Assembly: GCA_002269645.1 (NCBI GenBank)
Contig: NIVC01000542.1
Coordinates: forward strand, 1 to 64,000
DNA from: Macrostomum lignano
Lineage: Eukaryota
DNA: 64,000 nt
Direction: 5' to 3'
The notes under the pieces are model-generated. The model was not told the DNA's origin and ran no database searches. It was given only the letters and a program-made list of their open reading frames with translations. The translations under genes were made by a program, and so were the position numbers. Below, in pieces: positions 3,001 through 29,556 of this stretch; position 1 is the first letter of the stretch, and each line of letters begins with the position of its first letter.

Positions 3001-6000
3001 GGCACGTGGAGCGGTAAAGGCGCGGCCGCGTGTACGAACTGCGAGCCTGGAACAATCTCAACTGTCGGCTCTTCGGCATGCACCCAGTGCCCGGCAGGAA
3101 GCATTGCTGACCGAGCCGGGTTAAGCGCCTGCACTAAGTGTCCACCGGGTAGCTTCGCCAACAAGAAGGGGTCCAAGGAATGCACCAAGTGTCCTGCTGG
3201 AAGCGTGTGTACCAACGGCGCCTCCGAGCCGACCAAGTGCAAGGCGGGAACGTTTGCGATCGCCGGATCTAGCAAGTGTACACCGAGTCCACCGGGATCA
3301 TTCGTCGACAAGACTGGCTCGACAAGCGCTAAACCGTGTCCTGCAGGCACGTGGAGCGGTAAAGGCGCGGCCGCGTGTACGAACTGCGAGCCTGGAACAA
3401 TCTCAACTGTCGGCTCTTCGGCATGCACCCAGTGCCCGGCAGGAAGCATTGCTGACCGAGCCGGGTTAAGCGCCTGCACTAAGTGTCCACCGGGTAGCTT
3501 CGCCAACAAGAAGGGGTCCAAGGAATGCACCAAGTGTCCTGCTGGAAGCGTGTGTACAACGGCGCCTCCGAGCCGACCAAGTGCAAGGCGGGAACGTTTG
3601 CGATCGCCGGATCTAGCAAGTGTACACCGAGTCCACCGGGATCATTCGTCGACAAGACTGGCTCGACAAGCGCTAAACCGTGTCCTGCAGGCACGTGGAG
3701 CGGTAAAGGCGCGGCCGCGTGTACGAACTGCGAGCCTGGAACAATCTCAACTGTCGGCTCTTCGGCATGCACCCAGTGCCCGGCAGGAAGCATTGCTGAC
3801 CGAGCCGGGTTAAGCGCCTGCACTAAGTGTCCACCGGGTAGCTTCGCCAACAAGAAGGGGTCCAAGGAATGCACCAAGTGTCCTGCTGGAAGCGTGTGTA
3901 CAACGGCGCCTCCGAGCCGACCAAGTGCAAGGCGGGAACGTTTGCGATCGCCGGATCTAGCAAGTGTACACCGAGTCCACCGGGATCATTCGTCGACAAG
4001 ACTGGCTCGACAAGCGCTAAACCGTGTCCTGCAGGCACGTGGAGCGGTAAAGGCGCGGCCGCGTGTACGAACTGCGAGCCTGGAACAATCTCAACTGTCG
4101 GCTCTTCGGCATGCACCCAGTGCCCGGCAGGAAGCATTGCTGACCGAGCGGGTTAAGCGCCTGCACTAAGTGTCCACCGGGTAGCTTCGCCAACAAGAAG
4201 GGGTCCAAGGAATGCACCAAGTGTCCTGCTGGAAGCGTGTGTACAACGGCGCCTCCGAGCCGACCAAGTGCAAGGCGGGAACGTTTGCGATCGCCGGATC
4301 TAGCAAGTGTACACCGAGTCCACCGGGATCATTCGTCGACAAGACTGGCTCGACAAGCGCTAAACCGTGTCCTGCAGGCACGTGGAGCGGTAAAGGCGCG
4401 GCCGCGTGTACGAACTGCGAGCCTGGAACAATCTCAACTGTCGGCTCTTCGGCATGCACCCAGTGCCCGGCAGGAAGCATTGCTGACCGAGCGGGTTAAG
4501 CGCCTGCACTAAGTGTCCACCGGGTAGCTTCGCCAACAAGAAGGGGTCCAAGGAATGCACCAAGTGTCCTGCTGGAAGCGTGTGTACAACGGCGCCTCCG
4601 AGCCGACCAAGTGCAAGGCGGGAACGTTTGCGATCGCCGGATCTAGCAAGTGTACACCGAGTCCACCGGGATCATTCGTCGACAAGACTGGCTCGACAAG
4701 CGCTAAACCGTGTCCTGCAGGCACGTGGAGCGGTAAAGGCGCGGCCGCGTGTACGAACTGCGAGCCTGGAACAATCTCAACTGTCGGCTCTTCGGCATGC
4801 ACCCAGTGCCCGGCAGGAAGCATTGCTGACCGAGCGGGTTAAGCGCCTGCACTAAGTGTCCACCGGGTAGCTTCGCCAACAAGAAGGGGTCCAAGGAATG
4901 CACCAAGTGTCCTGCTGGAAGCGTGTGTACAACGGCGCCTCCGAGCCGACCAAGTGCAAGGCGGGAACGTTTGCGATCGCCGGATCTAGCAAGTGTACAC
5001 CGAGTCCACCGGGATCATTCGTCGACAAGACTGGCTCGACAAGCGCTAAACCGTGTCCTGCAGGCACGTGGAGCGGTAAAGGCGCGGCCGCGTGTACGAA
5101 CTGCGAGCCTGGAACAATCTCAACTGTCGGCTCTTCGGCATGCACCCAGTGCCCGGCAGGAAGCATTGCTGACCGAGCGGGTTAAGCGCCTGCACTAAGT
5201 GTCCACCGGGTAGCTTCGCCAACAAGAAGGGGTCCAAGGAATGCACCAAGTGTCCTGCTGGAAGCGTGTGTACGAACGGCGCCTCCGAGCCGACCAAGTG
5301 CAAGGCGGGAACGTTTGCGATCGCCGGATCTAGCAAGTGTACACCGAGTCCACCGGGATCATTCGTCGACAAGACTGGCTCGACAAGCGCTAAACCGTGT
5401 CCTGCAGGCACGTGGAGCGGTAAAGGCGCGGCCGCGTGTACGAACTGCGAGCCTGGAACAATCTCAACTGTCGGCTCTTCGGCATGCACCCAGTGCCCGG
5501 CAGGAAGCATTGCTGACCGAGCTGGGTTAAGCGCCTGCACTAAGTGTCCACCGGGTAGCTTCGCCAACAAGAAGGGGTCCAAGGAATGCACCAAGTGTCC
5601 TGCTGGAAGCGTGTGTACGAACGGCGCCTCCGAGCCGACCAAGTGCAAGGCGGGAACGTTTGCGATCGCCGGATCTAGCAAGTGTACACCGAGTCCACCG
5701 GGATCATTCGTCGACAAGACTGGCTCGACAAGCGCTAAACCGTGTCCTGCAGGCACGTGGAGCGGTAAAGGCGCGGCCGCGTGTACGAACTGCGAGCCTG
5801 GAACAATCTCAACTGTCGGCTCTTCGGCATGCACCCAGTGCCCGGCAGGAAGCATTGCTGATCGAGCTGGGTTAAGCGCCTGCACTAAGTGTCCACCGGG
5901 TAGCTTCGCAACAAGAAGGGGTCCAAGGAATGCACCAAGTGTCCTGCTGGAAGCGTGTGTACGAACGGCGCCTCCGAGCCGACCAAGTGCAAGGCGGGAA

Positions 6001-9000
6001 CGTTTGCGATCGCCGGATCTAGCAAGTGTACACCGAGTCCACCGGGATCATTCGTCGACAAGACTGGCTCGACAAGCGCTAAACCGTGTCCTGCAGGCAC
6101 GTGGAGCGGTAAAGGCGCGGCCGCGTGTACGAACTGCGAGCCTGGAACAATCTCAACTGTCGGCTCTTCGGCATGCACCCAGTGCCCGGCAGGAAGCATT
6201 GCTGATCGAGCTGGGTTAAGCGCCTGCACTAAGTGTCCACCGGGTAGCTTCGCAACAAGAAGGGGTCCAAGGAATGCACCAAGTGTCCTGCTGGAAGCGT
6301 GTGTACGAACGGCGCCTCCGAGCCGACCAAGTGCAAGGCGGGAACGTTTGCGATCGCCGGATCTAGCAAGTGTACACCGAGTCCACCGGGATCATTCGTC
6401 GACAAGACTGGCTCGACAAGCGCTAAACCGTGTCCTGCAGGCACGTGGAGCGGTAAAGGCGCGGCCGCGTGTACGAACTGCGAGCCTGGAACAATCTCAA
6501 CTGTCGGCTCTTCGGCATGCACCCAGTGCCCGGCAGGAAGCATTGCTGATCGAGCTGGGTTAAGCGCCTGCACTAAGTGTCCACCGGGTAGCTTCGCCAA
6601 CAAGAAGGGGTCCAAGGAATGCACCAAGTGTCCTGCTGGAAGCGTGTGTACGAACGGCGCCTCCGAGCCGACCAAGTGCAAGGCGGGAACGTTTGCGATC
6701 GCCGGATCTAGCAAGTGTACACCGAGTCCACCGGGATCATTCGTCGACAAGACTGGCTCGACAAGCGCTAAACCGTGTCCTGCAGGCACGTGGAGCGGTA
6801 AAGGCGCGGCCGCGTGTACGAACTGCGAGCCTGGAACAATCTCAACTGTCGGCTCTTCGGCATGCACCCAGTGCCCGGCAGGAAGCATTGCTGATCGAGC
6901 TGGGTTAAGCGCCTGCACTAAGTGTCCACCGGGTAGCTTCGCAAACAAGAAGGGGTCCAAGGAATGCACCAAGTGTCCTGCTGGAAGCGTGTGTACGAAC
7001 GGCGCCTCCGAGCCGACCAAGTGCAAGGCGGGAACGTTTGCGATCGCCGGATCTAGCAAGTGTACACCGAGTCCACCGGGATCATTCGTCGACAAGACTG
7101 GCTCGACAAGCGCTAAACCGTGTCCTGCAGGCACGTGGAGCGGTAAAGGCGCGGCCGCGTGTACGAACTGCGAGCCTGGAACAATCTCAACTGTCGGCTC
7201 TTCGGCATGCACCCAGTGCCCGGCAGGAAGCATTGCTGATCGAGCTGGGTTAAGCGCCTGCACTAAGTGTCCACCGGGTAGCTTCGCCAACAAGAAGGGG
7301 TCCAAGGAATGCACCAAGTGTCCTGCTGGAAGCGTGTGTACGAACGGCGCCTCCGAGCCGACCAAGTGCAAGGCGGGAACGTTTGCGATCGCCGGATCTA
7401 GCAAGTGTACACCGAGTCCACCGGGATCATTCGTCGACAAGACTGGCTCGACAAGCGCTAAACCGTGTCCTGCAGGCACGTGGAGCGGTAAAGGCGCGGC
7501 CGCGTGTACGAACTGCGAGCCTGGAACAATCTCAACTGTCGGCTCTTCGGCATGCACCCAGTGCCCGGCAGGAAGCATTGCTGATCGAGCTGGGTTAAGC
7601 GCCTGCACTAAGTGTCCACCGGGTAGCTTCGCAACAAGAAGGGGTCCAAGGAATGCACCAAGTGTCCTGCTGGAAGCGTGTGTACGAACGGCGCCTCCGA
7701 GCCACCAAGTGCAAGGCGGGAACGTTTGCGATCGCCGGATCTAGCAAGTGTACACCGAGTCCACCGGGATCATTCGTCGACAAGACTGGCTCGACAAGCG
7801 CTAAACCGTGTCCTGCAGGCACGTGGAGCGGTAAAGGCGCGGCCGCGTGTACGAACTGCGAGCCTGGAACAATCTCAACTGTCGGCTCTTCGGCATGCAC
7901 CCAGTGCCCGGCAGGAAGCATTGCTGACCGAGCTGGGTTAAGCGCCTGCACTAAGTGTCCACCGGGTAGCTTCGCAAACAAGAAGGGGTCCAAGGAATGC
8001 ACCAAGTGTCCTGCTGGAAGCGTGTGTACGAACGGCGCCTCCGAGCCGACCAAGTGCAAGGCGGGAACGTTTGCGATCGCCGGATCTAGCAAGTGTACAC
8101 CGAGTCCACCGGGATCATTCGTCGACAAGACTGGCTCGACAAGCGCTAAACCGTGTCCTGCAGGCACGTGGAGCGGTAAAGGCGCGGCCGCGTGTACGAA
8201 CTGCGAGCCTGGAACAATCTCAACTGTCGGCTCTTCGGCATGCACCCAGTGCCCGGCAGGAAGCATTGCTGATCGAGCTGGGTTAAGCGCCTGCACTAAG
8301 TGTCCACCGGGTAGCTTCGCAAACAAGAAGGGGTCCAAGGAATGCACCAAGTGTCCTGCTGGAAGCGTGTGTACGAACGGCGCCTCCGAGCCACCAAGTG
8401 CAAGGCGGGAACGTTTGCGATCGCCGGATCTAGCAAGTGTACACCGAGTCCACCGGGATCATTCGTCGACAAGACTGGCTCGACAAGCGCTAAACCGTGT
8501 CCTGCAGGCACGTGGAGCGGTAAAGGCGCGGCCGCGTGTACGAACTGCGAGCCTGGAACAATCTCAACTGTCGGCTCTTCGGCATGCACCCAGTGCCCGG
8601 CAGGAAGCATTGCTGACCGAGCTGGGTTAAGCGCCTGCACTAAGTGTCCACCGGGTAGCTTCGCAAACAAGAAGGGGTCCAAGGAATGCACCAAGTGTCC
8701 TGCTGGAAGCGTGTGTACGAACGGCGCCTCCGAGCCGACCAAGTGCAACGCGGGAACGTTTGCGATCGCCGGATCTAGCAAGTGTACACCGAGTCCACCG
8801 GGATCATTCGTCGACAAGACTGGCTCGACAAGCGCTAAACCGTGTCCTGCAGGCACGTGGAGCGGTAAAGGCGCGGCCGCGTGTACGAACTGCGAGCCTG
8901 GAACAATCTCAACTGTCGGCTCTTCGGCATGCACCCAGTGCCCGGCAGGAAGCATTGCTGACCGAGCTGGGTTAAGCGCCTGCACTAAGTGTCCACCGGG

Positions 9001-10430
9001 TAGCTTCGCAAACAAGAAGGGGTCCAAGGAATGCACCAAGTGTCCTGCTGGAAGCGTGTGTACGAACGGCGCCTCCGAGCCGACCAAGTGCAAGGCGGGA
9101 ACGTTTGCGATCGCCGGATCTAGCAAGTGTACACCGAGTCCACCGGGATCATTCGTCGACAAGACTGGCTCGACAAGCGCTAAACCGTGTCCTGCAGGCA
9201 CGTGGAGCGGTAAAGGCGCGGCCGCGTGTACGAACTGCGAGCCTGGAACAATCTCAACTGTCGGCTCTTCGGCATGCACCCAGTGCCCGGCAGGAAGCAT
9301 TGCTGATCGAGCTGGGTTAAGCGCCTGCACTAAGTGTCCACCGGGTAGCTTCGCCAACAAGAAGGGGTCCAAGGAATGCACCAAGTGTCCTGCTGGAAGC
9401 GTGTGTACGAACGGCGCCTCCGAGCCGACCAAGTGCAACGCGGGAACGTTTGCGATCGCCGGATCTAGCAAGTGTACACCGAGTCCACCGGGATCATTCG
9501 TCGACAAGACTGGCTCGACAAGCGCTAAACCGTGTCCTGCAGGCACGTGGAGCGGTAAAGGCGCGGCCGCGTGTACGAACTGCGAGCCTGGAACAATCTC
9601 AACTGTCGGCTCTTCGGCATGCACCCAGTGCCCGGCAGGAAGCATTGCTGATCGAGCTGGGTTAAGCGCCTGCACTAAGTGTCCACCGGGTAGCTTCGCC
9701 AACAAGAAGGGGTCCAAGGAATGCACCAAGTGTCCTGCTGGAAGCGTGTGTACGAACGGCGCCTCCGAGCCCACCAAGTGCAAGGCGGGAACGTTTGCGA
9801 TCGCCGGATCTAGCAAGTGTACACCGAGTCCACCGGGATCATTCGTCGACAAGACTGGCTCGACAAGCGCTAAACCGTGTCCTGCAGGCACGTGGAGCGG
9901 TAAAGGCGCGGCCGCGTGTACGAACTGCGAGCCTGGAACAATCTCAACTGTCGGCTCTTCGGCATGCACCCAGTGCCCGGCAGGAAGCATTGCTGATCGA
10001 GCTGGGTTAAGCGCCTGCACTAAGTGTCCACCGGGTAGCTTCGCAAACAAGAAGGGGTCCAAGGAATGCACCAAGTGTCCTGCTGGAAGCGTGTGTACGA
10101 ACGGCGCCTCCGAGCCCACCAAGTGCAAGGCGGGAACGTTTGCGATCGCCGGATCTAGCAAGTGTACACCGAGTCCACCGGGATCATTCGTCGACAAGAC
10201 TGGCTCGACAAGCGCTAAACCGTGTCCTGCAGGCACGTGGAGCGGTAAAGGCGCGGCCGCGTGTACGAACTGCGAGCCTGGAACAATCTCAACTGTCGGC
10301 TCTTCGGCATGCACCCAGTGCCCGGCAGGAAGCATTGCTGATCGAGCTGGGTTAAGCGCCTGCACTAAGTGTCCACCGGGTAGCTTCGCCAACAAGAAGG
10401 GGTCCAAGGAATGCACCAAGTGTCCTGCTG
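1..10430 (+). repeat. Coding tandem array, 345-bp unit, about 30 copies
   Basis: Shadow ORFs recur at exact 345-bp spacing (7038/7383, 8760/9105/9450/9795/10140). Units differ only at a handful of sites. Confidence 0.97.
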
Positions 10431-11801
10431 GATATTTTTCTTCGACTTTGAATTCAATAGAATGCACCCCTAGTCCTGCTGGCTATTTTATAAATGGAGT
10501 CGGTTCGACCTCCTACAATCCTTGTCCCGTAGGCACCTGGAGTGGACTTGGTTCAAGTGCGTGTACTGCCTGCATCCCTGGATCATTTTCCTCGTCTGCT
10601 GGATCTTCTTCTTGCAGGCGATGTTCTCCTGGAACTTTTGCTAATTTTAACGGCTCAAGTGAGTGCAAACCTTGTCCGCCTGGCAGATACAGCGGCCATA
10701 GCGGTGCCTCTTTGTGCGAGTTATGCAATCCAGGCAGCTGGAGCCGTTCGGGTGCTTTGTCCTGCCGCTTGTGCCCCAAGGGTCATTTTTCGCCTGCTGG
10801 ATCAAGGCACTGCATTCAATGTTCGGGGGGCACTTTTGCAGATCGGGAGGGCACCGCTAGCTGCACGATGTGCCCCCCTGGCAGCGTGGCTGAGGAGCCT
10901 GGCTCTACGCGTTGCAGTCTTTGCCAGGTAGGGCAATACGCGCCAAGCCCTGGTTCAGACAAATGCTTTGATTGTTTCCCTGGCTACTTCACGAACAAAA
11001 CTGGTAGTAGCACCTGCACGGCCTGCCCCCCTGGCACGCGATCCAGTATTCAGCGGGCTACCGAATGCATACAGTGCAACTTGGAGAACAATTTGTCATA
11101 TCGATCTGGTATGAGCATATGCGACGAGTGCCCCGAGTTCGCCCCGACACTCACAAAATATAAATGTTATGGTGAGCTGATTTGATAAATTTATTTTCCG
11201 TTTTACTTTTTTGTAGTTAGCTTTTTGGGGACATTGTCAACGACTTGACCTGACAGGAGTTTATTGCTAATCGAGCGTCACAAGTTGTGGCCTGAGGCAG
11301 TCCCTGTGCCAGTAGGACGGGATACCAGCTTTGGAGCTATTTTTAGACATCTGTTCGGGACGGTACTCATAATTTACTTATATTGGAACTTATAAAAACG
11401 TGAATAAAAAATTATATCCACTTTCCCACCGACATTTAGATCGAGTTAATACCGAGTGCTCTTCTAAAGACGGCATATCGAAAACGTGCAGGTATTCTGT
11501 AGACTTGAATGTGTGGTCGTACGGAGTCGCTTACGCTGATGGTCCCGGGCGTGACTTTCTGTTTTACACGTTTTCGAAGACAGTTGATATAAAAAAGTTT
11601 CTTTTAATGGCAAAGTCAAACGCCAGAAGCAGCGCAGAGAACTTGAATTTCCGATGCCTGCCATCCGGCAAGGAGAAACACTTCCCAACGTTCAGGCGGT
11701 ACAATAACTTTGAATGCGCGAATGCGCAAGCAATGGAGGTCACGCCGAAGCCATATCACAAGGTCATCATTATGGAGTTGGCGTTTTTCTATAAAGAGTA
11801 G
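1..11801 (+). CDS. Giant cysteine-rich repeat protein (CxxCxxG / ephrin-receptor-like, GCC2_GCC3-type repeats), 5'-truncated, with a probable spliced C-terminal beta-sandwich domain
   Basis: About 30 copies of a 115-aa unit (CTNGASEPTKCKAGTFAIAG...CTKCPAGSV) run to about 10430, then diverged CxxCxPG repeats to 11171. There is a phase-1 donor G|GTGAGC at 11172 and a phase-compatible acceptor CATTTAG| at 11439. The last exon 11440-11801 ends ...IMELAFFYKE*, and AATAAA lies at 11837-11842. Single-base indels break the frame within 1-8400 and are probably consensus errors. The splice junction is inferred. Confidence 0.75.
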
Positions 11802-13854: not shown

Positions 13855-16028
13855 TCACTTCTTAGCCGCCGGCGGCGCCTTGCTGCCATAGAGAATGCGG
13901 TTCATCTGCGTGTTCTGCTCGTCCATCTTGGCGTTCGTCTTGTCCGTCTTCACCGACATTCGCTCCAGCTGCGAGTTCTGCCTGTCGATCTCGCCGCCCA
14001 GCCCCATGGCCAGCTGCTTCAGCCGGCCCATGCCATGCTCCATCTCGCCCAGGTTTTCGCTGAACGCCCTGTCGTAGGAGGTCTGCGGCTGCTGCCGCTG
14101 CTGCTGCTGCTGGTAGCCGGCGGCCCCCGTGGCTGCGGCGCCAAAGGATGCCGCGGGCTCCTGGCGGCGAACGTGGAATGGAACAGCTGCTGTGAGACTG
14201 GAGACTGGACGCTCAGCAGTTCTCACCATTGAGACACTCAGCAGTCTCCCCATTGAGACACTCGGCAGTCTCCCCATTGAGACACTCAGCAGTCTCCCCA
14301 TTGAGACACTCAGCAGTCTCCCCATTGAGACACTCAGTCTCCCCATTGAGACACTCAGCAGTCTCCCCATTGAGACACTCAGTCTCCCCATTGAGACGCT
14401 CAGCAGTTCTCACCATTGAGACACTCAGCAGTCTCCCCATTGAGACACTCGGCAGTCTCCCCATTGAGACACTCAGCAGTCTCACCATTGAGACACTCAG
14501 CAGTCTCCCCATTGAGACACTCAGCAGTCTCACCATTGAGACACTCAGCAGTCTCACCATTGAGACACTCAGCAGTCTCACCATTGAGACACTCAGCAGT
14601 CTCACCATTGAGACACTCAGCAGTCTCACCATTGAGACACTCAGCAGTCTCACCATTGAGACACTCAGCAGTCTCACCATTGAGACACTCAGCAGTCTCC
14701 CCATTGAGACACTCAGTCTCCCCATTGAGACACTCAGCAGTCTCACCATTGAGACACTCAGCAGTCTCCCCATTGAGACACTCAGCAGTCTCCCCATAGA
14801 CACTCAGCAGTCTCGCCAGAAACCCAAATCTCACATGGGACACTAATAAATTTCAATTAGAGACACAGGAAACCCGAAATCTCAAAGTCCCCAAAGCTCA
14901 CCTGGGCAGCGACTCTCCTGGCCTCGGCGGTGGAGCTGACGGCCATGGCCTTGTCAAGGCTGGCGCCGGCGGGCTCGTACTGCTGCGCTGGCTGCTGGCG
15001 CTTCTTGGCCGAGTCGCCGCGGAACCAGTTCTTGACGCCGCCGAACATCGAGCTCAGGCTATTGATGTGGCCCTGCGATTCCTTCTGGACGGCCTCGATG
15101 TGGTCCAGCTTCTCCTCTGTTCGGTTCAGCACCTCGCCCTGCCTGACCAGCTCTTGGGCGGTGTCCACGCCCATGCTCTCGCTGCTGTAAATTGACTGAA
15201 GAGCCCGCCGTTGCGTCTCCAGCTGCCGGCTTTGCGAGGCCTGCAAGCCGGCATCAAAGGTGCACAAGCACATGTAATTTGAGTCTGCAGTGTTTAACTT
15301 CTCCTAGCCTCGCATACTGATGCATTCCCCAATCACAGAAGCCTCCCCCAGTCTTCTCCTCCCTTCGCTCCGGTCGTCTTATCCTCTGTCGATTTAAAAC
15401 TCGTCTCGACTCTTATTTTTGTCCCTTGCCTGTCCCTCTCCTAGTCTTATCTACTTCCAGACTCCCTCCACCCCATCTGCCCCAGTCTCCCTCCACCCCA
15501 TCTGCCCCAGTCTCCCTCCACCCCATCTGCCCCAGTCTCCCTCCACCCCATCTGCCCCAGACTCCCTCCACCCCATCTGCCCCAGACTCCCTCCACCCCA
15601 TCTGCCCCAGACTCCCTCCATCCCATCTGCCCCAGACTCCCTCCACCCCATCTGCCCCAGTCTCCCTCCACCCCATCTGCCCCAGTCTCCCTCCACCCCA
15701 TCTGCCCCAGACTCCCTCCACCCCATCTGCCCCAGTCTCCCTCCACCCCATCTGCCCCAGTCTCCCTCCACCCCATCTGCCCCAGACTCCCTCCACCCCA
15801 TCTCGCCAGTCTTCCCACCGATCCTCCGCGGTGACAGCAGCCGCTCACCTGCACCTGCTGCTGCACAGTCGACCGGCCTTCATAGCCGTAACCGCCGCCA
15901 GGATTGTAGGAGCCGAAGCTGCCAGCCTGCCGGTCCTGCCCAGTCTCGAACGGGTTCCGGCCGCCGCCGCCGCCAAGACTAAAGGGATTTTTATCCTCTG
16001 TGTAGAACGGGTTTCTGCTGTCAGACAT
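13855..16028 (-). CDS. SNAP29: Synaptosomal-associated protein 29 (Qbc-SNARE), about 274 aa
   Basis: Exons 16028-15849, 15240-14902 and 14160-13855, all phase 0 with GT-AG introns. N-terminal NPF motifs, first SNARE helix (QRRALQSIYSSESMGVDTAQELVRQGEVL), second SNARE helix (ENLGEMEHGMGRLKQLAMGLGGEIDRQNSQL), and no palmitoylation Cys cluster. Confidence 0.88.
14205..14810. repeat. Minisatellite, 24-bp unit (ACTCAGCAGTCTCCCCATTGAGAC) with 21-bp variants, SNAP29 intron 2
   Basis: Direct reading; about 25 copies. Confidence 0.95.
15460..15805. repeat. Minisatellite, 25-bp unit (CCCCATCTGCCCCAGTCTCCCTCCA), SNAP29 intron 1
   Basis: Direct reading; about 14 copies; G-rich on the sense (minus) strand. 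Confidence 0.95.
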
Positions 16029-16469
16029 TCCTACAGCTTGTCGCTGCAAATGGCGGCAGGAGAGAAAACTATGGGGGCTCTGCCAGCAAATAAGGCTCTC
16101 TATCTCTGTTTTAAAAGTAGGCTCACACCAGAACTGCGGTAGCCCCCGCTAGTGTACATTGCCCTCTGTCTCCAGAATATCTCTGCAAACAACCTCTATA
16201 CAAATACTGGTCTATTCTGATTCTAATAATAGCACAGACGTGCTCAGTGACTAAGCCTTTCCCTACCCGTAATTACGGCCCTCTTAAAAGAGCACCTCGT
16301 GACTCAATTTCGCTATTTGCAAACTGCATGGCTAACAACCTCGTATAAAAAATTCTAATAAGTCTACGCAGCTTTCAAAAATATGAATCATCTCAAATTA
16401 GTCAGACTCCAAACCGACTTGATGAAGCTTTAATTACGAGAAGCCCAGAAGCTGCTGCGATTGCAATTT

Positions 16470-16671
16470 AAACAAAACAAAACTTGCTAAGGAGACAAAG
16501 GGGGTCAAACAGGGTGGAAATGCACGCCAAGGCTCTCGAGTGTACAGCGGCCCCCTGCCGACTACTTATTTCCAAGAGAACGAACGCCAACTTAATGGGG
16601 CCGTGTGCGGACTCGAACCCGGGTAACCTTTACACGGGAGTCGGAGGCGTTGCGGCCGAGCTGCTCGGCCC
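16470..16671 (-). mobile_element. tRNA-derived element (pseudo-tRNA or SINE head)
   Basis: Minus strand 16671-16598 reads GGGCCG...GGGTTCGAGTCC...CGGCCC. The acceptor-stem halves pair and the B-box is intact, but the T-stem and anticodon stem pair poorly. A (TTTG)-like tail lies near 16470-16485. Confidence 0.5.
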
Positions 16672-16784
16672 TCTGAGCAGGGAGAACTTTTCTTTTTTTT
16701 CAATTGGAACCCTATGACCTTTTAGATCCCAAAACAATTAAATTAAATTAAATTAAAAAAAACAATGTCCAACTGGTCCAGGTC

Positions 16785-16990
16785 TAAATCCCTAATTGAA
16801 AATCCCATAATCCAGGTGTTAAATCCCTAATTGAATATCCCATCATCCAGGTGTTAAATCCCTAATTACAGATCCCATCATCCAGGTGTTAAATCCCTAA
16901 TTACAGATCCCATCATCCAGGTGTTAAATCCCTAATTACAGATCCCATAATCCAGGTGTTAAATCCCTAATTACAGATCCCATCATACAG
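16785..16990. repeat. Minisatellite, 35-bp unit (AAATCCCTAATTACAGATCCCATCATCCAGGTGTT), about 6 copies
   Basis: Direct reading; period 35 (16821/16856). Confidence 0.9.
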
Positions 16991-17178
16991 ATGTCAATCA
17001 CTATTCAATATCCCATCATCGAGGTTTTGGGATATTCAATGACTGACACATCAATGAATGACTGCAAAATGCTTCGCGCAAATCTCTCCGATATAAACAA
17101 AGGTCACTCGGCACCGCGCAGTGACCCAGCCAAAAGGCCAGCTACATGAAAGCCAGGTCAGTGAGCAGTTCTAAGAGG

Positions 17179-20101
17179 TCATTTTTCTGTCCTGCCAGCC
17201 AGCCGCTTAGCGAAGGTTTGCGCTACGATGAGCGGGAAGGCCAGCGTGGCGTCCGAGTAGACCTTCACAGGCCGCGCGTCCAGCCGGATTTTGCCCCAGC
17301 TGACGGCCTCGTCGGGCCTGGCGCCGGAGTCGCTGCCATCGAACTCCTGGCCGGTGTTGATGAACACGGCAAAGTTGGCCCCGTTGCGCATGAGGTTGGC
17401 ATTGCAGGTGTGGTGCTTCACGACCCCGCCGCCCAGCACTATCATGCCGGTGTTGCGGGCGAACACCGCCTGGCTGTTCACCAGCCGGATGTCCTCGATG
17501 GCGTCCAGGACGAGGCCGGGACTGCGGTAGCTGTGAAAGTACAGCACGTCGCCGCACGCGCCGTCTGTGATGGACGGGCAGAACACAGGGATGCCGTTGC
17601 GGTGGCACCAGTAGAGCACCGACTCGGGGCTGTTGATCTCTCTGGAAGAATATATTGGCATTTTGCGTTTTGGCTACGTAAACAGTAGTTCAATAGCACT
17701 AATCTACATAAGTCACTCATTAGTCTCACCCATGAGTCGCTCAATAGTCTCACCCATGAGTCACTCAATAGTCTCACCCATGAGTCACTCAATAGTCTCA
17801 CCCATGAGACTATCATCCATGACAGGAATGCATAAAGGACTCAGGACAGGAATGCATAAAGGACTCAGGACAGGAATGGATAAAGGACTCAGGACAGGAA
17901 TGGATAACGGACTCAGCACAGGAATGCATAAAGGACTCAGGACAGGAATGCATAAAGGACTCAGGACAGGAATGCATAAAGGACTCAGGACAGGAATGCA
18001 TAAAGGACTCAGGACAGGAATGCATAACGGACTCAGGACAGGAATGCATAAAGGACTCAGGACAGGAATGCATAAAGGACTCAGGACAGGAATGCATGAA
18101 GAACTCAGGACAGGAATGCATGAAGGGCTCAGGACAGGAATGCATAAAGGACTCAGCACAGGAATGCATGAAGGACTCAGGACAGGAATGCATAAAGGAC
18201 TCAGGACAGGAATGCATAAGGACTCAGGACAGGAATGCATAAAGGACTCAGGACAGGAATGCATAAAGGACTCAGGACAGGAATGCATGGAGGACTCAGG
18301 ACAGGAATGCATGAAGGACTCAGGACAGGAATGCATGAAGGACTCAGGACAGGAATGCATGAAGGACTCAGGACAGGAATGCATGAAGGACTCAGGACAG
18401 GAATGCATGAAGGGCTCAGGACAGGAATGCATAAAGGACTCAGGACAGGAATGCATAAAGGACTCAGGACAGGAATGCATGAAGGACTCAGGACAGGAAT
18501 GCATGAAGGGCTCAGGACAGGAATGCATAAAGGACTCAGGACAGGAATGCATGAAGGACTCAGGACAGGAATGCATGATGGACTCAGGACAGGAATGCAT
18601 AAAGGACTCAGGACAGGAACGCATGCAAGTCTCAGTTAAGAAGAGCCCCACCTGCCTAGGCGGTGAATGAGCTTAGATGGAGTCCAGTTGATTTTCTGCT
18701 CATTCTGCTCAGCCAGCATGACGTCAAGGATGGGCACCAGCCAGGACTCGAACGCGCAGTAGTTTTTGTTCGGCACCAGCAGGTTGCCGATCCGGTTGAT
18801 GCCGGCCTGACGCAGCTGCGCGCCCGGCCAGCGATGGAAGTCGCCGATGTAGGTGGGGTGCATGCACTTGATGAGGTCCTCCTCCACGGCGCCGCCGGTG
18901 GTGACGAGCACGTCAACCAGGTTGTGCTCGACCAGGTAGCGAATTGACTCGCGTACGCCGCTGGAGATCATGTTGGACGTGAAGGCCAAGAATATGGTGC
19001 AGTTCGTGCGGGCCCGGCCGTATGGATTCGGGTTGGACACCTCCGAGTCTCCATTGGCGGCTGCGGCACCCGCGGCTTCCTCCGGCTTGGCAAACTTGCA
19101 GTCGAGCATTCGGTTGATTTCGTCTATGGCCAGCGACAGGTTGGTGCCCTGCGGGTGAATCAATCGTATCTACCTGCCGATCTACAGTATCTACCTGCTG
19201 ATCTATTTACAGTATCTAACTGCCAATCTTCTACAGCATCTACCTGCCGATCTACAGTATCTACCTGCCGATCTACAGTATCTACCTGCCGATCTACAGT
19301 ATCTACCTGCCGATCTACAGTATCTACCTGCCGATCTACAGTATCTACCTGCCGATCTACAGTATCTACCTGCCGATCTACAGTATCTACCTGCCGATCT
19401 ACTTACAGTATCTACCTGCCGATCTATTTACAGTATCTAACTGCCGATCTACAGTATCTACCTGCCGACCTATCTACAGTATCTAACTGCCGATCTACAG
19501 TATCTACCTGCCGATCTACAGTATCTACCTGCCGATCTGCGGTATCTAACTGGCCGATCTATTTACAGTATCTAACTGCCAATCTACAGTATCTACCTGC
19601 CGACCTATCTACAGTATCTAACTGCCGATCTACAGTATCTACCTGCCGATCTGCGGTATCTAACTGCCGATCTATTTACAGTATCTAACTGCCAATCTAC
19701 AGTATCTACCTGCCGACCTATCTACAGTATCTAACTGCCGATCTACAGTATCTACCTGCCGATCTGCGGTATCTAACTGCCGATCTATTTACAGTATCTA
19801 ACTGCCAATCTACAGTATCTACCTGCCGACCTATCTACAGTATCTAACCGCCCATTTAACTACTGAACTGCAGCATCTAACTACTGAACTGCAGCACCTA
19901 CAGGGTAAGTAAGCAGAAAAGGTAAACATGAAGACTTACCTGAAAGCCTGTGGTGGCAAATGATTTCATCAGTGCTTCCAGTGACAGCCCGTCAGGCGCA
20001 TTGAAGTCGTGACCCTTGACCGGCGTGTCCACGTCTTCTGGCAGCTGGCCGGACTGCATCAGCACAGCCTGCTGGCTGATCTGCGGCGGCTGCTGAGACA
20101 T
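17179..20101 (-). CDS. DHPS: Deoxyhypusine synthase, 373 aa
   Basis: Exons 20101-19940, 19148-18652 and 17641-17179 sum to 1122 nt. Family motifs: TTGFQ|[69 protein letters not shown]. Confidence 0.95.
17715..18630. repeat. Two adjacent 24-bp minisatellites in DHPS intron 2 (TAGTCTCACCCATGAGTCACTCAA about 4 copies; GACAGGAATGCATAAAGGACTCAG about 33 copies)
   Basis: Direct reading. Confidence 0.95.
19167..19845. repeat. Minisatellite, 21-bp unit (GTATCTACCTGCCGATCTACA) with length variants, DHPS intron 1
   Basis: Direct reading; about 30 copies. Confidence 0.95.
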
Positions 20102-20224
20102 GGCTGAAGTGTCCGGGGAGTGCTTGAGAATGTACTTCTTTATCAAGTATTGCAACTGTCTTCGGTTCTAGTCAAAAAATTGCTAGGCAAAATACTTTAG
20201 AATGTTTTAGCATCATTTTACAGT

Positions 20225-20750
20225 ATTACAGTGAATATAGCAGTCGTAGTAGTATTAGTAGTAGTATCAGTATTAGTAATAGTAGTAGTAGTAGTATGAG
20301 TAGTATTAGTAGTATTAGCAGTATTAGCAGCAGTAGTAGTAGTAGTAGTAGAAGTAGTAGTACTAGTAGAAGTAGTAGTAGTAGTAGTATCAGTAGTAGT
20401 AATAGTAGTAGTAGTATTAATAGCAGTAGTATTAGTAGTAGTAGTGTTAGTAGTAGTAGTAGTAGAAGTAGTAGTAGTATTAGTATCAGTAGCAGTAATA
20501 GTAGTAGTGGTATTAGTAGTATTAGTATTAGTAGTAGTAGTATTAGTATTAGTAGTAGTGGTATTAGTAGTAGTAGTATTAGTATTAGTAGTATTAGTAG
20601 TAGTAGTATTAGTAGTAGTATTAGTAGTAGTATTAATATTAGTAGTATTAGTAGTAGTAGTATTAGTAGTAGTATTAGTAGTAGTATTAGTATTAGTAGT
20701 ATTAGTAGTAGTAGTATTAGTAGTAGTATTAGTAGTAGTAGTAGTAGTAC
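20225..20750. repeat. (AGT)n microsatellite with ATT interruptions, between MFSD9-like and DHPS
   Basis: Direct reading. Confidence 0.97.
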
Positions 20751-21233
20751 TAATTGTAGTAGAATATTATTTTTACTACACATTGGCATCCACGCTCAAG
20801 AGTCCGTGCTGTACCTTGCCAGGAAAGGTGGGCAGCAAAGTAATAAAAAACAAGTAAAAAACATTTTTGATTATGTTTGTTTATATTTTTGTCAAAACGA
20901 GAGATAAACAACGGAACATTGTGATTTTGTAGATTTTGTGCGATTCTGTGCAAAATCAGATCAGGAAAGACAGCTGGAAGTGCGGGCAAAGCGCCTGGCA
21001 CTTGGAATAATGCTCATACTGGGAACCAATGAAAATCAGGAACTCAAAGTTGGATCGCATCCCTTCCTGCCGTTCCTGGTGGTTAATTAAAATTATTCTA
21101 ACAGAAAATTACGATTAAAAAATCTATACAGACTACTTGCGCTTGCAATGCAGTAGGCAGGTAGCAAATTTTATAGCTTAAAATTTCAGATAAAAACTGG
21201 GGTGAAGACTCTAAAAACTGGGGTGAAGACTCG

Positions 21234-22515
21234 TCAGCGCGACTTCCGATCCGCATCCGGACAGCCAGCGGCCAGCCGTCCTCGCCGGCTCTGCAGCCAG
21301 TTAACCGCGGGAGCCGCGGCGGCCAGCGGGCAGGCCAGGCAGACGGAGATCAGCGCTGCAGCCGGCTGGCTCGGAGCTTCGTGGCCGGGCAGCGCGGCTT
21401 CGACGCAGCCGCCGAGCAGCGGAGCGAGCAGGCGGGCCAGCGAGTTCACCGACTGCGAGGCGGCCATAGCGTCGGTCAGGGCGGCCTCGGGACAGGCGAA
21501 GGACGAGCTGACAAGCCGGCAGCGCAGCAGGGTCGGGTAGGCGTCCCTGGCCAGGCCGTTGAAGAAGCTCAGCGGGGCCTGGGCGGCGGCGAACTGTGCC
21601 AGGCTGGTGACGAGACCCGAGGAGGCCAGTGAGAGGCAGGCGGCCTGGCCGGTGGCTGCCAGCAGCACCAGGCGGTCGGGGCCGAGGCCAGTGGCCGACT
21701 GCAGCGGCCCGACGACTAGGCCGGACAGCAGGCCGGAGACGGCGCCCAGCGAGGTGGCGAGGCCCGCGCCGGCGGACGAGGCAGAGAAGCGCGAGTTCAG
21801 CGCCAGGGCGAAGTTGTGCCGGAACAGCTGAGCGGCCAGCGACATCGGCAGCTGCAGCGTCAGCAGGTCGGCCACGGCCAGCGCCGAGGAGGTCGGAGTC
21901 GGCCTAGAACTCCGACCGGATGACTTCGGCGCCACCTCGGCAGCTGGCGCTGCTGCCGACACCGCGGTCGCGATGCCGACAGTCAAAAAGCCGACGCAGG
22001 CGAGGCCGGTCACCAGGCGAAAGCCGCCAAAGTCGAAGGCGACCCCGCCGACCATGGGCCCGACGATGAAGCCGAGGGAGGACAGCGTCGAGTGCGAGCC
22101 GAGCAGACGGATCCGGCGACTTTCGCTGACGTCAGGCGACGAGGCGAGCTGCGTCCGCTGCAGAGTCTGGGTGTGCTTGAACAGAGCCGTGATGAGGCGG
22201 AGGCTGGCTAGGCTGGGGAAGTCGGGCGGCCCGAGGCCCAACGCCAGGTAGCCCGCGGCGGAGGCCACGCAGCAAAGGCTGTGGGCGTTGCGGGCGCCGA
22301 ACCGGCGAACCAGGCGGCCCTGGGAGGAGGGAGGGCGCGAATTGGGAAGCCTAACTGAGCTGGGCTGGGAATGGGAAACTGAGACCAAGACTGACAGACT
22401 CAAGAGAAACCATCGGGTAGGGTTGCTCGCTTAACAACAATCAAGCAATGAAGCAATGAAGCAATGTTGATCAAGAGAAACCAGCAGACACAGACAGGCA
22501 GGCAGGCAGGAAGGC

Positions 22516-22548
<33 letters not shown>

Positions 22549-22556
22549 GGCCGGCA

Positions 22557-22601
<45 letters not shown>

Positions 22602-23095
22602 ACAGACACAGACAGGCAGACAGACAGACAGACAGACAGGCAGGCAGGCAGGCAGGCAGACAGACAGGCAGACAGACAGACAGACAGACAGGCAGACAGA
22701 CAGACAGGCAGGCAGGCAGACAGACACAGACAGGCAGACAGACAGGCAGACAGGCAGACAGGCAGACAGACAGACAGGCAGGCAGGCAGGCAGGCAGACA
22801 GACAGACAGGCAGACAGACAGGCAGACAGACAGGCAGACAGACAGACAGGCAGATAGGCAGGCAGGCAGACAGACACAGACAGGCAGACAGACAGGCAGA
22901 CAGGCAGACAGGCAGGAAGGCAGACAGACAGACAGACAGGCAGGCAGGCAGACAGGTAGGCAGGCAGGCAGGCAGGCAGGCAGACAGACACAGACAGGCA
23001 GACAGACAGACAGACAGACAGACAGACAGGCAGGCAGGCAGGCAGGCAGACAGACAGACAGACAGGCAGACAGACAGACAGACAAACAGACAGGC

Positions 23096-23128
<33 letters not shown>

Positions 23129-23135
23129 GGCAGGC

Positions 23136-23176
<41 letters not shown>

Positions 23177-23670
23177 GGCAGACAGACAGACAGACAGACA
23201 GGCAGGCAGACAGGCAGACAGACAAACAGACAGACAGGCAGACAGACACACAGACAGACAGGCAGACAGACAGTACACAGCAAAAGACTCACGCAAATCG
23301 AGCTTGAAAAAATCTGCACAGCTCCGTACTCGGACTCTGAAAAATCAAAGTTTCCCAGTAATGTCTCACTAAGATTGAAGCAACACGAATACTACTAATA
23401 GTAGTAAAATATTCGAGTAGTTTATTGGCTTACGAAACAATCCCATGTAGAACGGAGCCATGTCGATTTGTTTCAGGTGAATGGGCAGGCAGGTGATGAC
23501 CATGCTGACGCAGAACAGGTCCTGAGCAAATTACGAGTAAATGAAGGTAAGATAAGGCCGATGAGCCACGCTACAGCGCACTTGAGCAGTGAACTCACCG
23601 CAAAGCCTGCCAGGCACAGTAGAAACTGCCGCCTGTCAGATTGCGCCAGCTCAGCGACAAATAAGCCGGC
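21234..23670 (-). CDS. MFSD9: Major facilitator superfamily transporter, MFSD9-like, about 430 aa; no genomic ATG found
   Basis: Exons 23670-23599, 23521-23434, 23336-23293 and 22319-21234 are phase-consistent (1290 nt). They give AGLFVAELAQSDRRQFLLCLAGFA|DLFCVSMVITCLPIHLKQ...GLF|QSEYGAVQIFSSSIC|GRLVRRFG...LGFIVGPMVGG, which matches the MFSD9 N-terminal pattern as I recall it (DLFGVSM...YGILQLFSS) and MFS motif C. Confidence 0.75.
22485..23275. repeat. (CAGA/CAGG)n microsatellite, MFSD9-like intron 3
   Basis: Direct reading. Confidence 0.97.
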
Positions 23671-23719
23671 CTGAAGTTGAGGGGCGGTGGGCGAATGGCG
23701 AACGTTACGGGCAATCGTC

Positions 23720-24120
23720 AAGGGATAAGGGTGATTCTCATGGGACAAGGGGTGATTCTCATGGGACAAGGGGTGATTCTCATGGGACAAGGGGTGATTC
23801 TCATGGGACAAGGGGTGATTCTCATGGGACAAGGGGTGATTCTCATGGGACAAGGGGTGATTCTCATGGGATAAGGGGGGTTGCTCATGGGGTAAGGGGG
23901 GTTGCTCATAGGGTAAGGGGGTTGCTCATGGGGTAAGGGGGGTTGCTCATGGGGTAATTCGTGACTCTCATGGGATAAGGGATAAGGGGTGATTCTCATG
24001 GGATAAGGGATAAGGGGTGCTCCTCATGGGATAACGGGTGATTCTCATGGGATAACGGGTGATCCTGATGGGATAGGGATAGAGGGTGGTTCTCATGGAA
24101 TACTCGTACGGGTTGATTAT
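23720..24120. repeat. Minisatellite, 21-bp unit (GGGTGATTCTCATGGGACAAG), degenerating rightward
   Basis: Direct reading. Confidence 0.9.
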
Positions 24121-24934: not shown

Positions 24935-25556
24935 CATAGCAGAGATGGGATAACTCAGTGTGGCAGAGATGGGATAACTCACTGTGGCAGAGATGGGATA
25001 ACTCAGTGTGGCAGAGATGGGATAACTCAGTGTGGCAGAGATGGGATAACTCACTGTGGCAGAGATGGGATAACTCACTGTGGCAGAGATGGGATAACTC
25101 AGTGTGGCAGAGATGGGATAACTCAGTGTGGCAGAGATGGGATAACTCTATAGCAGAGATGGGATAACTCACTGTGGCAGAGATGGGATAACTCAGTGTG
25201 GCAGAGATGGGATAACTCACTGTGGCAGAGATGGGATAACTCAGTGTGGCAGAGATGGGATAACTCACTGTGGCAGAGATGGGATAACTCACTGTGGCAG
25301 AGATGGGATAACTCACTGTGGCAGAGATGGGATAACTCAGTGTGGCAGAGATGGGATAATTCACTGTGGCAGAGATGGGATAATTCACTGTGGCAGAGAT
25401 GGGATAATTCACTGTGGCAGAGATGGGATAATTCACTGTGGCAGAGATGGGATAACTCAGTGTGGTAGAGATGGGATAATTCACTGTGGCAGAGATGGGA
25501 TAATTCACTGTGGCAGAGATGGGATAACTCACTGTGGCAGAGATGGGATAACTCAC
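24935..25556. repeat. Minisatellite, 24-bp unit (GGCAGAGATGGGATAACTCACTGT), about 26 copies
   Basis: Direct reading. Confidence 0.95.
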
Positions 25557-27790: not shown

Positions 27791-29513
27791 AGACAGACAC
27801 ACACACACAGACACACACACACAGACAGACACACACATACACACAGACAGACACACAGACACACACACACACACACACACACAGACACACACAGACACAC
27901 AGACAGACACACAGACAGACACACAGACACACAGACAGACACACACACACACAGACAGACACACAGACAGACACACACACAGACAGACACACAGACAGAC
28001 ACACACACACACAGACACACGTGGATCAGCCCACCTCCAGACTGGTGTAGTTGAAAAGCCGGCTGTCCCAGAGGTCGTGCCGGCCGCGCGGCCCGTCATG
28101 AAAGTAGCAGTTGTTGCTGCCGTCGAACTGGTTGAGCCCGTCGATGGTGTTGTTGGAGGCGTGGCTGTGCACAATGTCCAGCAGCACGATGATGCCCATG
28201 CTGTGTGCGGCATCGATGAGCTGCTTGAGCTCGCAGGGGGTGCCGTAGCGGCTGGAGGCGGCGAAGAAAGAGGTGATCTGGTAGCCGAAGCTGGCATAGT
28301 AGGCGTGCTCCATCACGGCCATGAGCTGGATGCAGTTGTAGCCGAGGTCCCGCACCCTGGGAAGCACGCTCTCCCTGAAGTAGTCGTAGGTGGCCACGCG
28401 CTCCTCGGGCGAGCTGATGCCTACGTGGGCCTCGTAGATGCGCAGGCTGGCTGGCACCGGCGGTCTGGGCACGTTCAGCCTGCGGCGGGGTGAACAGAGT
28501 GCGGATGCTATTGAGACGAACAAGAAGCATGTTTTGGCCATGACTCCAAATAACTCTAGTGTGTACAATGTACTTGCATTCAAAAGTCCCATGCATGGCA
28601 ATTGGTAGAGTTCTTACTAAGTGCATTCATTCAACTTGGGTACAAGTGAGCGCCAACCTATTGGTCTATGTGCCAGCGGCCCAGGTTCGATTCCAAGTGC
28701 AGTCACATTAATTTGGGGCTAAACTGGAATCTTGGCTTGGGTCTGCTTGGGCGGAATGGGCAGCAATGCCTCTCACCGGTTATGTGACACACAACCCCCT
28801 GACTTCAATAAACAATGAGTGCGCACAAAAAACGACAGATTAAGTGCCTTCCTGTCACATATTAACTCCGGGAGAAGTGCTATGGCATGGTCAAAATACA
28901 TAGATTTTCAGGTGCACAGAAGGCAGACTGAATCCTCCATCGCGGCCAAAGTACACGATGCCCTAACCAGCTCAGCTGAGCAGGCCAAACTGTTTGCAGC
29001 TCACTTGTACGGCTTCGGCGGATTCCACAGCCGCTGTTCATAGACGGTGCCGCTGGGCGCTCCCTTTGGCGGCCGGGTCACGTAGGGCGCCCACGGCGAC
29101 AGCCGGTCGAGCCGCTGGCCCTGCGGCCCAATGATGAGCAGCTTGATCACCGAGTTGTGCTCAATGGCTGGCTTGCCATCTGGCTTGGGCGGAATGACCA
29201 GCGTCCACTTGCCGAAGGGCTGCTTCTCGAACGGGTACTGGTCCTCGTGCCAGTTGTTGAAGTCGCCGCGCAGGTAGACGGCCTGTGCGTTCGGCGCCCA
29301 CTCCTGGCAGCGCACCGTGCCGTCCGGGTCCACGCGGACGCCGAACTCGCGGTAGCCGTGCGACAGGCGCTCGATGCCATCGGCCTCTTCAATTCGACGC
29401 CATTCGCTGCGCAGGCAGTTGTAGCGCCGGCGCAGCTCGGTTTCGTAGCCTCGCAGGTAGGGATCGAACTTGAACAGCTCCTCGAGCTGCGGATTCTCGG
29501 GCGGCGCTTCCAT
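26102..29513 (-). CDS. GBE1: 1,4-alpha-glucan branching enzyme, 688 aa
   Basis: Exons 29513-29005, 28479-28035, 27515-26698 and 26396-26102 sum to 2067 nt. GH13 motifs: [36 protein letters not shown] (catalytic Asp), AEEVSG (catalytic Glu), [29 protein letters not shown]. Confidence 0.96.
26490..26650. repeat. Minisatellite, 23-bp unit (TGCTCTAATGCGGCCTGTTTTGG), GBE1 intron 3
   Basis: Direct reading; about 6 copies. Confidence 0.9.
27690..28020. repeat. (CAGA)n/(CA)n compound microsatellite, GBE1 intron 2
   Basis: Direct reading. Confidence 0.95.
28638..28706 (+). mobile_element. Degenerate tRNA-like/SINE fragment in GBE1 intron 1
   Basis: B-box CCAGGTTCGATTCC near 28681-28694; no convincing cloverleaf. 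Confidence 0.25.
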
Positions 29514-29556
29514 GGCGGGCTGCAACTGCAGGACTTTGGGACATGAGCGGCTGACT

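Follow-up and report, generated by a model that had tools for sequence, protein, structure and literature searches.

An MFSD9-like transporter gene of the flatworm Macrostomum lignano that probably takes its start codon from the spliced leader

Background

The Macrostomum lignano gene Mlig033358.g8 (also written Mlig033358g8), on the minus strand of its scaffold, encodes a conserved protein deposited as GenBank PAA81260.1 and marked "partial"; its first coding exon contains no ATG, which raises the question of where its translation begins. A preliminary description, made from the DNA alone, had proposed that the initiator is supplied by a trans-spliced leader ending in AUG, on the assumption that the DNA came from a flatworm. 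This assumption turned out to be right: the window, i.e. the whole stretch of 64,000 nucleotides analysed here, corresponds with 100% identity to bases 1-64000 of scaffold NIVC01000542.1 of the M. lignano Mlig_3_7 assembly (GCA_002269645.1).

M. lignano has a single 35-nt spliced leader, CGGTCTCTTACTGCGAAGACTCAATTTATTGCATG, whose 3' end, TTTATTGCATG, closes with an ATG (PMC8629364, PMC5173321); a longer form has also been described (PMC5173321). The leader of this species does, then, end in the AUG on which the proposal depends, and it contains no other ATG. The terminal ATG of the Macrostomum leader has been termed a start codon (PMC10468722), and the flatworm leaders reported so far all end in ATG (PMC12582326). 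From the figures given in PMC8629364, about 45% of conserved M. lignano genes can be estimated to be trans-spliced.

Results

A search with the protein returned a 97%-identical M. lignano match, also flagged "partial", and the best animal match was a barnacle (Pollicipes) MFSD9-like protein, with 32% identity. Other top matches (P0010-P0017), unnamed in their library, carry the helix-1 motif GFLDLFGVSM. The MFS_1 profile (PF07690) is matched over its whole length, positions 1-347 of 347 (E = 1.2e-15; 57.8 bits, the cut-off being 33.4 bits), as in MFSD9 and TetA-like MFS_1 transporters. The GFxDLF motif in helix 1 and a short cytosolic N-tail are shared with MFSD9-type proteins, from which the M. 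lignano product differs in that identity is just 26-37%; its motif A is degenerate (GRLVRRFGARN). On these one-way matches, and after the Pollicipes protein, which is named MFSD9-like, we class the product as an MFSD9-like MFS_1 transporter.

As had been described, the first coding exon directly follows CTTCAG| at 23671. The minus strand reads ...ccaccgcccctcaaCTTCAG|GCCGGCTTATTTGTCGCT... around this point, or ...CCACCGCCCCTCAACTTCAG|GCCGGCTTATTTGTCGCTGAG... over a longer stretch, placing the exon start at 23670. Exon 1 (23599..23670, minus strand, as are the exons that follow) is 72 nt long, has no ATG, is followed by a GTGAGT donor at 23598, and encodes AGLFVAELAQSDRRQFLLCLAGFA, which comprises the N-terminal tail together with the initial half of transmembrane helix 1. 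Exon 2 (23434..23521), beginning with DLFCVSMVITCLPIHLKQIDMAPFYMGLF, contains Met32, which lies halfway through helix 1 and is the first in-frame ATG that the genome offers. Exon 3 (23293..23336) encodes QSEYGAVQIFSSSIC, with a spliced product identical to PAA81260.1, and exon 4 (21234..22319) contributes the remainder of the MFS_1 domain and the stop codon. The four-exon model (23670-23599, 23521-23434, 23336-23293, 22319-21234) yields 429 amino acids without Met, i.e. PAA81260.1 plus three more N-terminal residues, AGL; adding a leader-derived Met brings the protein to 430 residues, close to the length originally suggested.

The putative trans-splice acceptor, CTTCAG (23671..23676, minus strand, with its AG at 23672-23671), is the same in three paralogues and fits [T/C]TNCAG, the top motif at M. 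lignano trans-splice sites (9551 of 21754; PMC8629364). It is preceded by a 40-nt tract, 70% pyrimidine. The presumed outron includes 41 nt of unique sequence (23677..23717, minus strand) between a minisatellite and the acceptor, where CCTTGAC and GTAAC may be taken as branch-point-like. Conservation of the acceptor region was considered as evidence and dropped, neutral DNA being already about 96-97% identical between paralogues; that the last 60 nt ahead of the acceptor are identical carries little weight, because the paralogues are just about 3-4% diverged.

When leader and exon 1 are joined at 23670, they are in frame with no stop between them and translate to MAGLFVAELAQSDRRQFLLCLAGFA (MAGLFVAEL...), 430 amino acids, in agreement with the M-AGLFV... 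product of the preliminary description. The junction reads ...UUGCAUG|GCC..., a good Kozak context (GCAUGG, with G at -3 and G at +4). The MAGLF... product was absent from the protein collections searched (full-length homologue search, exact look-up and N-terminal search). Within the 64-kb window, the search for the leader or an SL RNA gene gave a single match with three mismatches, which is at chance level.

Might the genome itself supply an initiator further upstream? The frame of exon 1 remains open for 255 nt, up to a TGA at 23928-23926, and this stretch, which reads ...SHENHPL(x7)...YPLTIARNVRHSPTAPQLQ, contains not one ATG. It enters the minisatellite of the presumed outron (23718..24102, minus strand), made of 21-28-bp units with the transcribed-strand unit GAATCACCCCTTRTCCCATGA, for which Tandem Repeats Finder reports a period of 21 and 16.5 copies at 23718-24075. 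Each unit contains one ATG, and all are out of frame in the window copy. Two earlier readings of this region are thereby borne out: the upstream frame runs into a 21-bp minisatellite with no in-frame ATG, and the apparent M at 23853, in the open reading frame 23473..23853, is a TTG. The whole spacer up to the stop codon of the upstream gene, GBE1 (26102), measures 2431 nt and contains 8 ATGs in frame, each of which meets a stop before exon 1, and 23 out of frame.

An upstream exon with an in-frame ATG, so far undetected, might be cis-spliced to the acceptor at 23671, and the fact that parasitic flatworms widely use the same acceptors for cis- and trans-splicing (PMC12582326) lends this alternative some ground. 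If any GT is allowed as a donor, the 2.4-kb spacer does offer nine phase-0 ATG...GT candidates, but a GT[AG]AG donor is missing from each of them, and a search of the same spacer for ATG-started open stretches ending in phase 0 at such a donor found none, as expected from the earlier remark that no convincing ATG-bearing exon lies before the GBE1 stop. Such an exon is also absent from all six public models of the gene and its paralogues, which are RNA-seq- or transcript-informed and represent three paralogous loci, and it would lengthen an N-terminus that is already of normal length. We regard a cis-spliced initiator exon as very improbable.

The N-terminus indeed appears to be complete, with Met alone missing, because once the leader Met is added the conserved Asp of helix 1 becomes residue 26, against a median of 22 (interquartile range 16-31) in 98 Met-initiated homologues. 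Helix 1 of MFSD9-type proteins has its homologue in exon 1 (FLLCLAGFADLFCVSM, vs LYLVGFLDLFGVSM in the relatives), position 1 of the MFS_1 profile aligns at residue 19 of the 430-aa protein, and the hydrophobic peak centred on residues 25-32 includes Met32; for these reasons a start upstream of about codon 16 is needed.

Translation from Met32 (MVITCLP...) would follow two UniProt entries, A0A1I8H4C4 and A0A1I8FHY5, which start there and lose half of helix 1. Met32 would be the first AUG of an mRNA starting at about 23661, as annotated, and it is the choice of automated pipelines. Yet it lies within the hydrophobic core of a helix whose conserved part aligns with codons of exon 1, in a domain that begins at residue 19, and the lone exon 1 change between paralogues, a CTA to CTG substitution, is synonymous. 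A start at Met32 is given very little credence here. In the 255-nt stretch, among the candidate exons of the spacer and at Met32, we thus find no genomic AUG that would give the full-length conserved protein.

The gene is functional and its ORF is under purifying selection: the three copies differ pairwise by 12 synonymous and 7 nonsynonymous codons, by 12 and 6, and by 8 and 4, and the sole indel among the three ORFs is a whole 4-codon block.

All six public models of the gene and its paralogues lack both an initial Met and an upstream exon, and they start within -11 to +12 nt of the acceptor. The three Mlig_3_7 CDSs, all "partial", begin 9, 9 and 12 nt past the AG, so that none of the three starts exactly at it and the annotation pinpoints no trans-splice peak there. 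In the pipeline behind these models, leaders were trimmed, units were cut at trans-splice and poly(A) signals, and TransDecoder was then run (PMC5730564); genes using the leader AUG come out as 5'-partial because the leader is trimmed before ORF calling. The gap of 9-12 nt was considered as a sign of another splice site and rejected as such, since the CDS of the neighbouring SNAP29-like gene likewise falls 9 nt short in two paralogues and begins exactly at the AG, after TTTGCAG|, in the third (L001). The 9-nt shortfall is an annotation effect.

The opposite offset is seen in the ML2 models, three of which (UniProt A0A1I8I1F4, A0A1I8FQD5 and A0A1I8FEC2) start with QLQAG, 9 nt before the AG. These models, we take it, derive from exonerate-polished transcripts, in an annotation presumably made with MAKER. 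Local alignment of a leader-bearing transcript to the genome, with exonerate-like scores, begins 11 nt upstream of the acceptor, at CTCAAC, by a small score margin; there CTCAATTT of the leader matches genomic CTCAACTT, CAA (Q) becomes the first full codon, and the exact QLQ start is reproduced.

The leader might instead be joined at another in-frame AG. One candidate is GCTGAG| at 23650, with the product M-LAQSDRR...; others are the in-frame GAG| sites of the minisatellite, which would lengthen the N-terminus. The frame is kept at all of these AGs, and with Mlig_3_7 models starting 9-12 nt past CTTCAG the exact site is left unfixed by the annotation. None of them matches [T/C]TNCAG, however; the annotated CDSs contain bases upstream of 23650, and the ML2 models reach no further than 9-11 nt upstream of CTTCAG|, short of the repeats. 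The chance that one of these sites serves as the acceptor seems to us slight indeed.

The ML2 models of this locus are poor in general. UniProt A0A1I8F5Y1 (P0009), of 876 aa and named "RibD_C domain-containing", combines antisense MFS sequence, sense MFS sequence and DHPS with many frameshifts, and was set aside as an artefact of noisy assembly; A0A1I8H4C4 and A0A1I8FHY5, with their start at Met32, are truncated, and one older ML2 model is a frameshifted fragment named "Derlin". The identifier Mlig033358 was not found in literature text or supplements.

Comparison of the paralogues limits one of the original observations. The lack of an in-frame upstream ATG stands for the window copy, but it is not a conserved trait: at two paralogous loci, L001 (position 9875) and L003 (position 9878), both equivalent to about 23784 in the window, a minisatellite ATG lies in frame, 114 nt upstream of exon 1. 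This ATG arises from differing lengths of the repeat and of a poly-C run, and would give an N-terminal extension, MSNPPLSHENHPLSHENHPYPLTIARNVRHSPTAPQLQ. The upstream frame is thus labile, and possibly prone to assembly errors.

The in-frame ATG at -114 in L001 and L003 is also the main ground for supposing that there is no trans-splicing at all and that translation begins in an unspliced leader, in the paralogues g2 and g11 at the minisatellite ATG (MSNPPLSHENHP...QLQAGLF) and in the window copy at a near-cognate codon. The frame is indeed open for 135-255 nt upstream, and the ML2 models take in 9 nt upstream of the AG. On the other side, the window copy has no ATG and its frame is set by repeat and poly-C length; any longer leader would include no fewer than 9 out-of-frame ATGs in 330 nt; and TransDecoder would extend the ORF if transcripts reached upstream, whereas the Mlig_3_7 CDSs all start after the AG. 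Moreover, the three ML2 models share one end point, QLQ, a pattern that suits an alignment artefact better than ragged pre-mRNA. We consider initiation on unspliced RNA quite improbable.

A related idea, to which we attach only a very small probability, is that the paralogues start differently, g8 strictly on the AUG supplied in trans, and g2 and g11 also having gained a genomic in-frame ATG through minisatellite slippage. Were this so, RNAs of g2 and g11 that are not trans-spliced would encode a 38-residue N-terminal extension, and the gene would be caught in passage between dependence on the leader and independence from it, with repeat length as the driving factor.

Exact look-ups of the reconstructed neighbours identified GBE1 as Mlig003792g2 (partial), DHPS as Mlig033358g9 (complete) and the SNAP29-like gene as Mlig033358g10 (partial). 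The MFS gene (g8), DHPS (g9) and the SNAP29-like gene (g10) share the prefix Mlig033358, consecutive numbers and the minus strand (window 13855-23670); by the authors' naming they are one annotated polycistronic unit, with the MFS gene first. The MFS-DHPS and DHPS-SNAP29 spacers measure 1130 and 1135 nt; subtracting tandem repeats leaves about 563 and 886 nt. With respect to the operon spacer threshold of 1 kb used for M. lignano (PMC8629364), the repeat-adjusted spacers are below it, in genes of the same strand and of a common annotated unit. The GBE1-MFS spacer of 2431 nt comes to about 1430 nt after the same adjustment.

The putative acceptors of DHPS and of the SNAP29-like gene lie 2 and 15 nt before their own ATGs. 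In DHPS (20103..20110, minus strand) ACTTCAG|CC is followed by an ATG at 20101, the offset of 2 nt that had been noted, which holds for the window copy, as does the offset of 6 nt noted for GBE1. The same offset of 2 nt claimed for SNAP29, on the basis of CTGTAG|GA ATG, is probably wrong: the annotated CDS contains bases upstream, and that of the L001 paralogue begins exactly after TTTGCAG|. With this acceptor, ending at 16044, and its own ATG at 16028 (16028..16050, minus strand), 15 nt further on, the leader ATG would be in frame in SNAP29 too (RQAVG-MSD...). In GBE1 two acceptors lie in tandem at a distance of 6 nt (CCTGCAG|TTGCAG|; window 29511-29532, minus strand; L001 3180-3210; L003 3915-3940), and 1-nt indels between these and the gene's own ATG distinguish its paralogues (CCCGCC, CCCCGTC, CCCCGCC). 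The leader ATG is in frame in some GBE1 copies only, and this stretch therefore behaves as UTR.

Introns and spacers of the cluster almost all hold long micro- or minisatellites (22490-23273, 24939-25556, 17821-18624, 19166-19852 and 20238-20762), including an (ACAG)n array of 198 copies and others built of 24-bp, 21-bp and TAG-rich units; copy numbers vary between paralogues. Elsewhere in the window, positions 114-10432 are occupied by a tandem array with a period of 345 bp (115 codons), in 30 copies, 99% identical and with 60% GC, probably coding for the repeat units of a large protein rich in Cys; an annotated gene of 1063 aa enters this region from about 11801.

Discussion

Taken together, the evidence makes it probable that this MFSD9-like gene, having no start codon of its own, takes its ATG from the spliced leader. 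What can be read directly at the locus is the exon structure, the frame, the lack of a genomic ATG, the acceptor consensus, the complete N-terminus and the purifying selection on the ORF; from these, and from the published leader sequence, we infer that the leader is actually joined at 23670 and that ribosomes start on its AUG.

According to this model, the Mlig033358.g8 pre-mRNA would be trans-spliced, the 35-nt leader being joined to CTTCAG| at 23671/23670. The reaction would discard an outron full of out-of-frame ATGs and, in L001 and L003, the in-frame ATG at -114 as well, leaving the leader as the sole 5' UTR. The last AUG of the leader, with the GCC codon supplying its +4 G, would serve as the first codon of a 430-aa protein, M-AGLFVAELAQSDRRQ-[TM1].... 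The predicted leader-exon 1 junction is TTTATTGCATG|GCCGGCTTATTTGTCGC, i.e. TTTATTGCATGGCCGGCTTATTTGTCGC, and the predicted N-terminal peptides are (Ac-)AGLFVAELAQSDR or MAGLFVAELAQSDR.

If the model holds, the transporter would be made from trans-spliced RNA alone, and trans-splicing would be obligatory for its expression. Against the model, the MFS gene is the first of its unit, so that trans-splicing is not required here to split off an upstream cistron. In practical terms, the value of the observation lies in mending "partial" and truncated database entries. In GenBank the protein and its paralogues are entered as "partial", and UniProt has truncated or oddly started versions; with the leader ATG added, the protein is most likely complete. 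Other 5'-partial M. lignano models may be similar cases, because the pipeline trimmed the leader before ORF calling.

The arrangement resembles the M. lignano polycistronic units described by Wudarski (2017) and by Ustyantsev and Berezikov (2021), in that its genes have one prefix and one strand, with repeat-adjusted spacers below the 1-kb threshold; the MFS gene is the first of its unit, and the upstream GBE1 belongs to another one, Mlig003792.

As to initiation, donation of the initiator Met by a flatworm leader was shown in 2006 (Cheng, Cohen, Ndegwa and Davis, J Biol Chem), and the frames concerned are called "slORFs" in PMC9851317. In Schistosoma mansoni, as that work is quoted in PMC9851317, 28% of trans-spliced transcripts carry the leader AUG in frame, and it is required by more than 40 cDNAs. 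The present gene is like this class in having a leader that ends in AUG, a leader AUG in frame, and an acceptor that directly precedes an open, conserved frame without an AUG of its own. It differs in belonging to the free-living Macrostomum rather than to Schistosoma, and in having two paralogues with a repeat-borne, in-frame genomic ATG in the outron; and while the 2006 work drew on cDNAs and translation assays, use of the AUG is here inferred. The locus is thus a plausible further case of a known class, and calls for no new mechanism.
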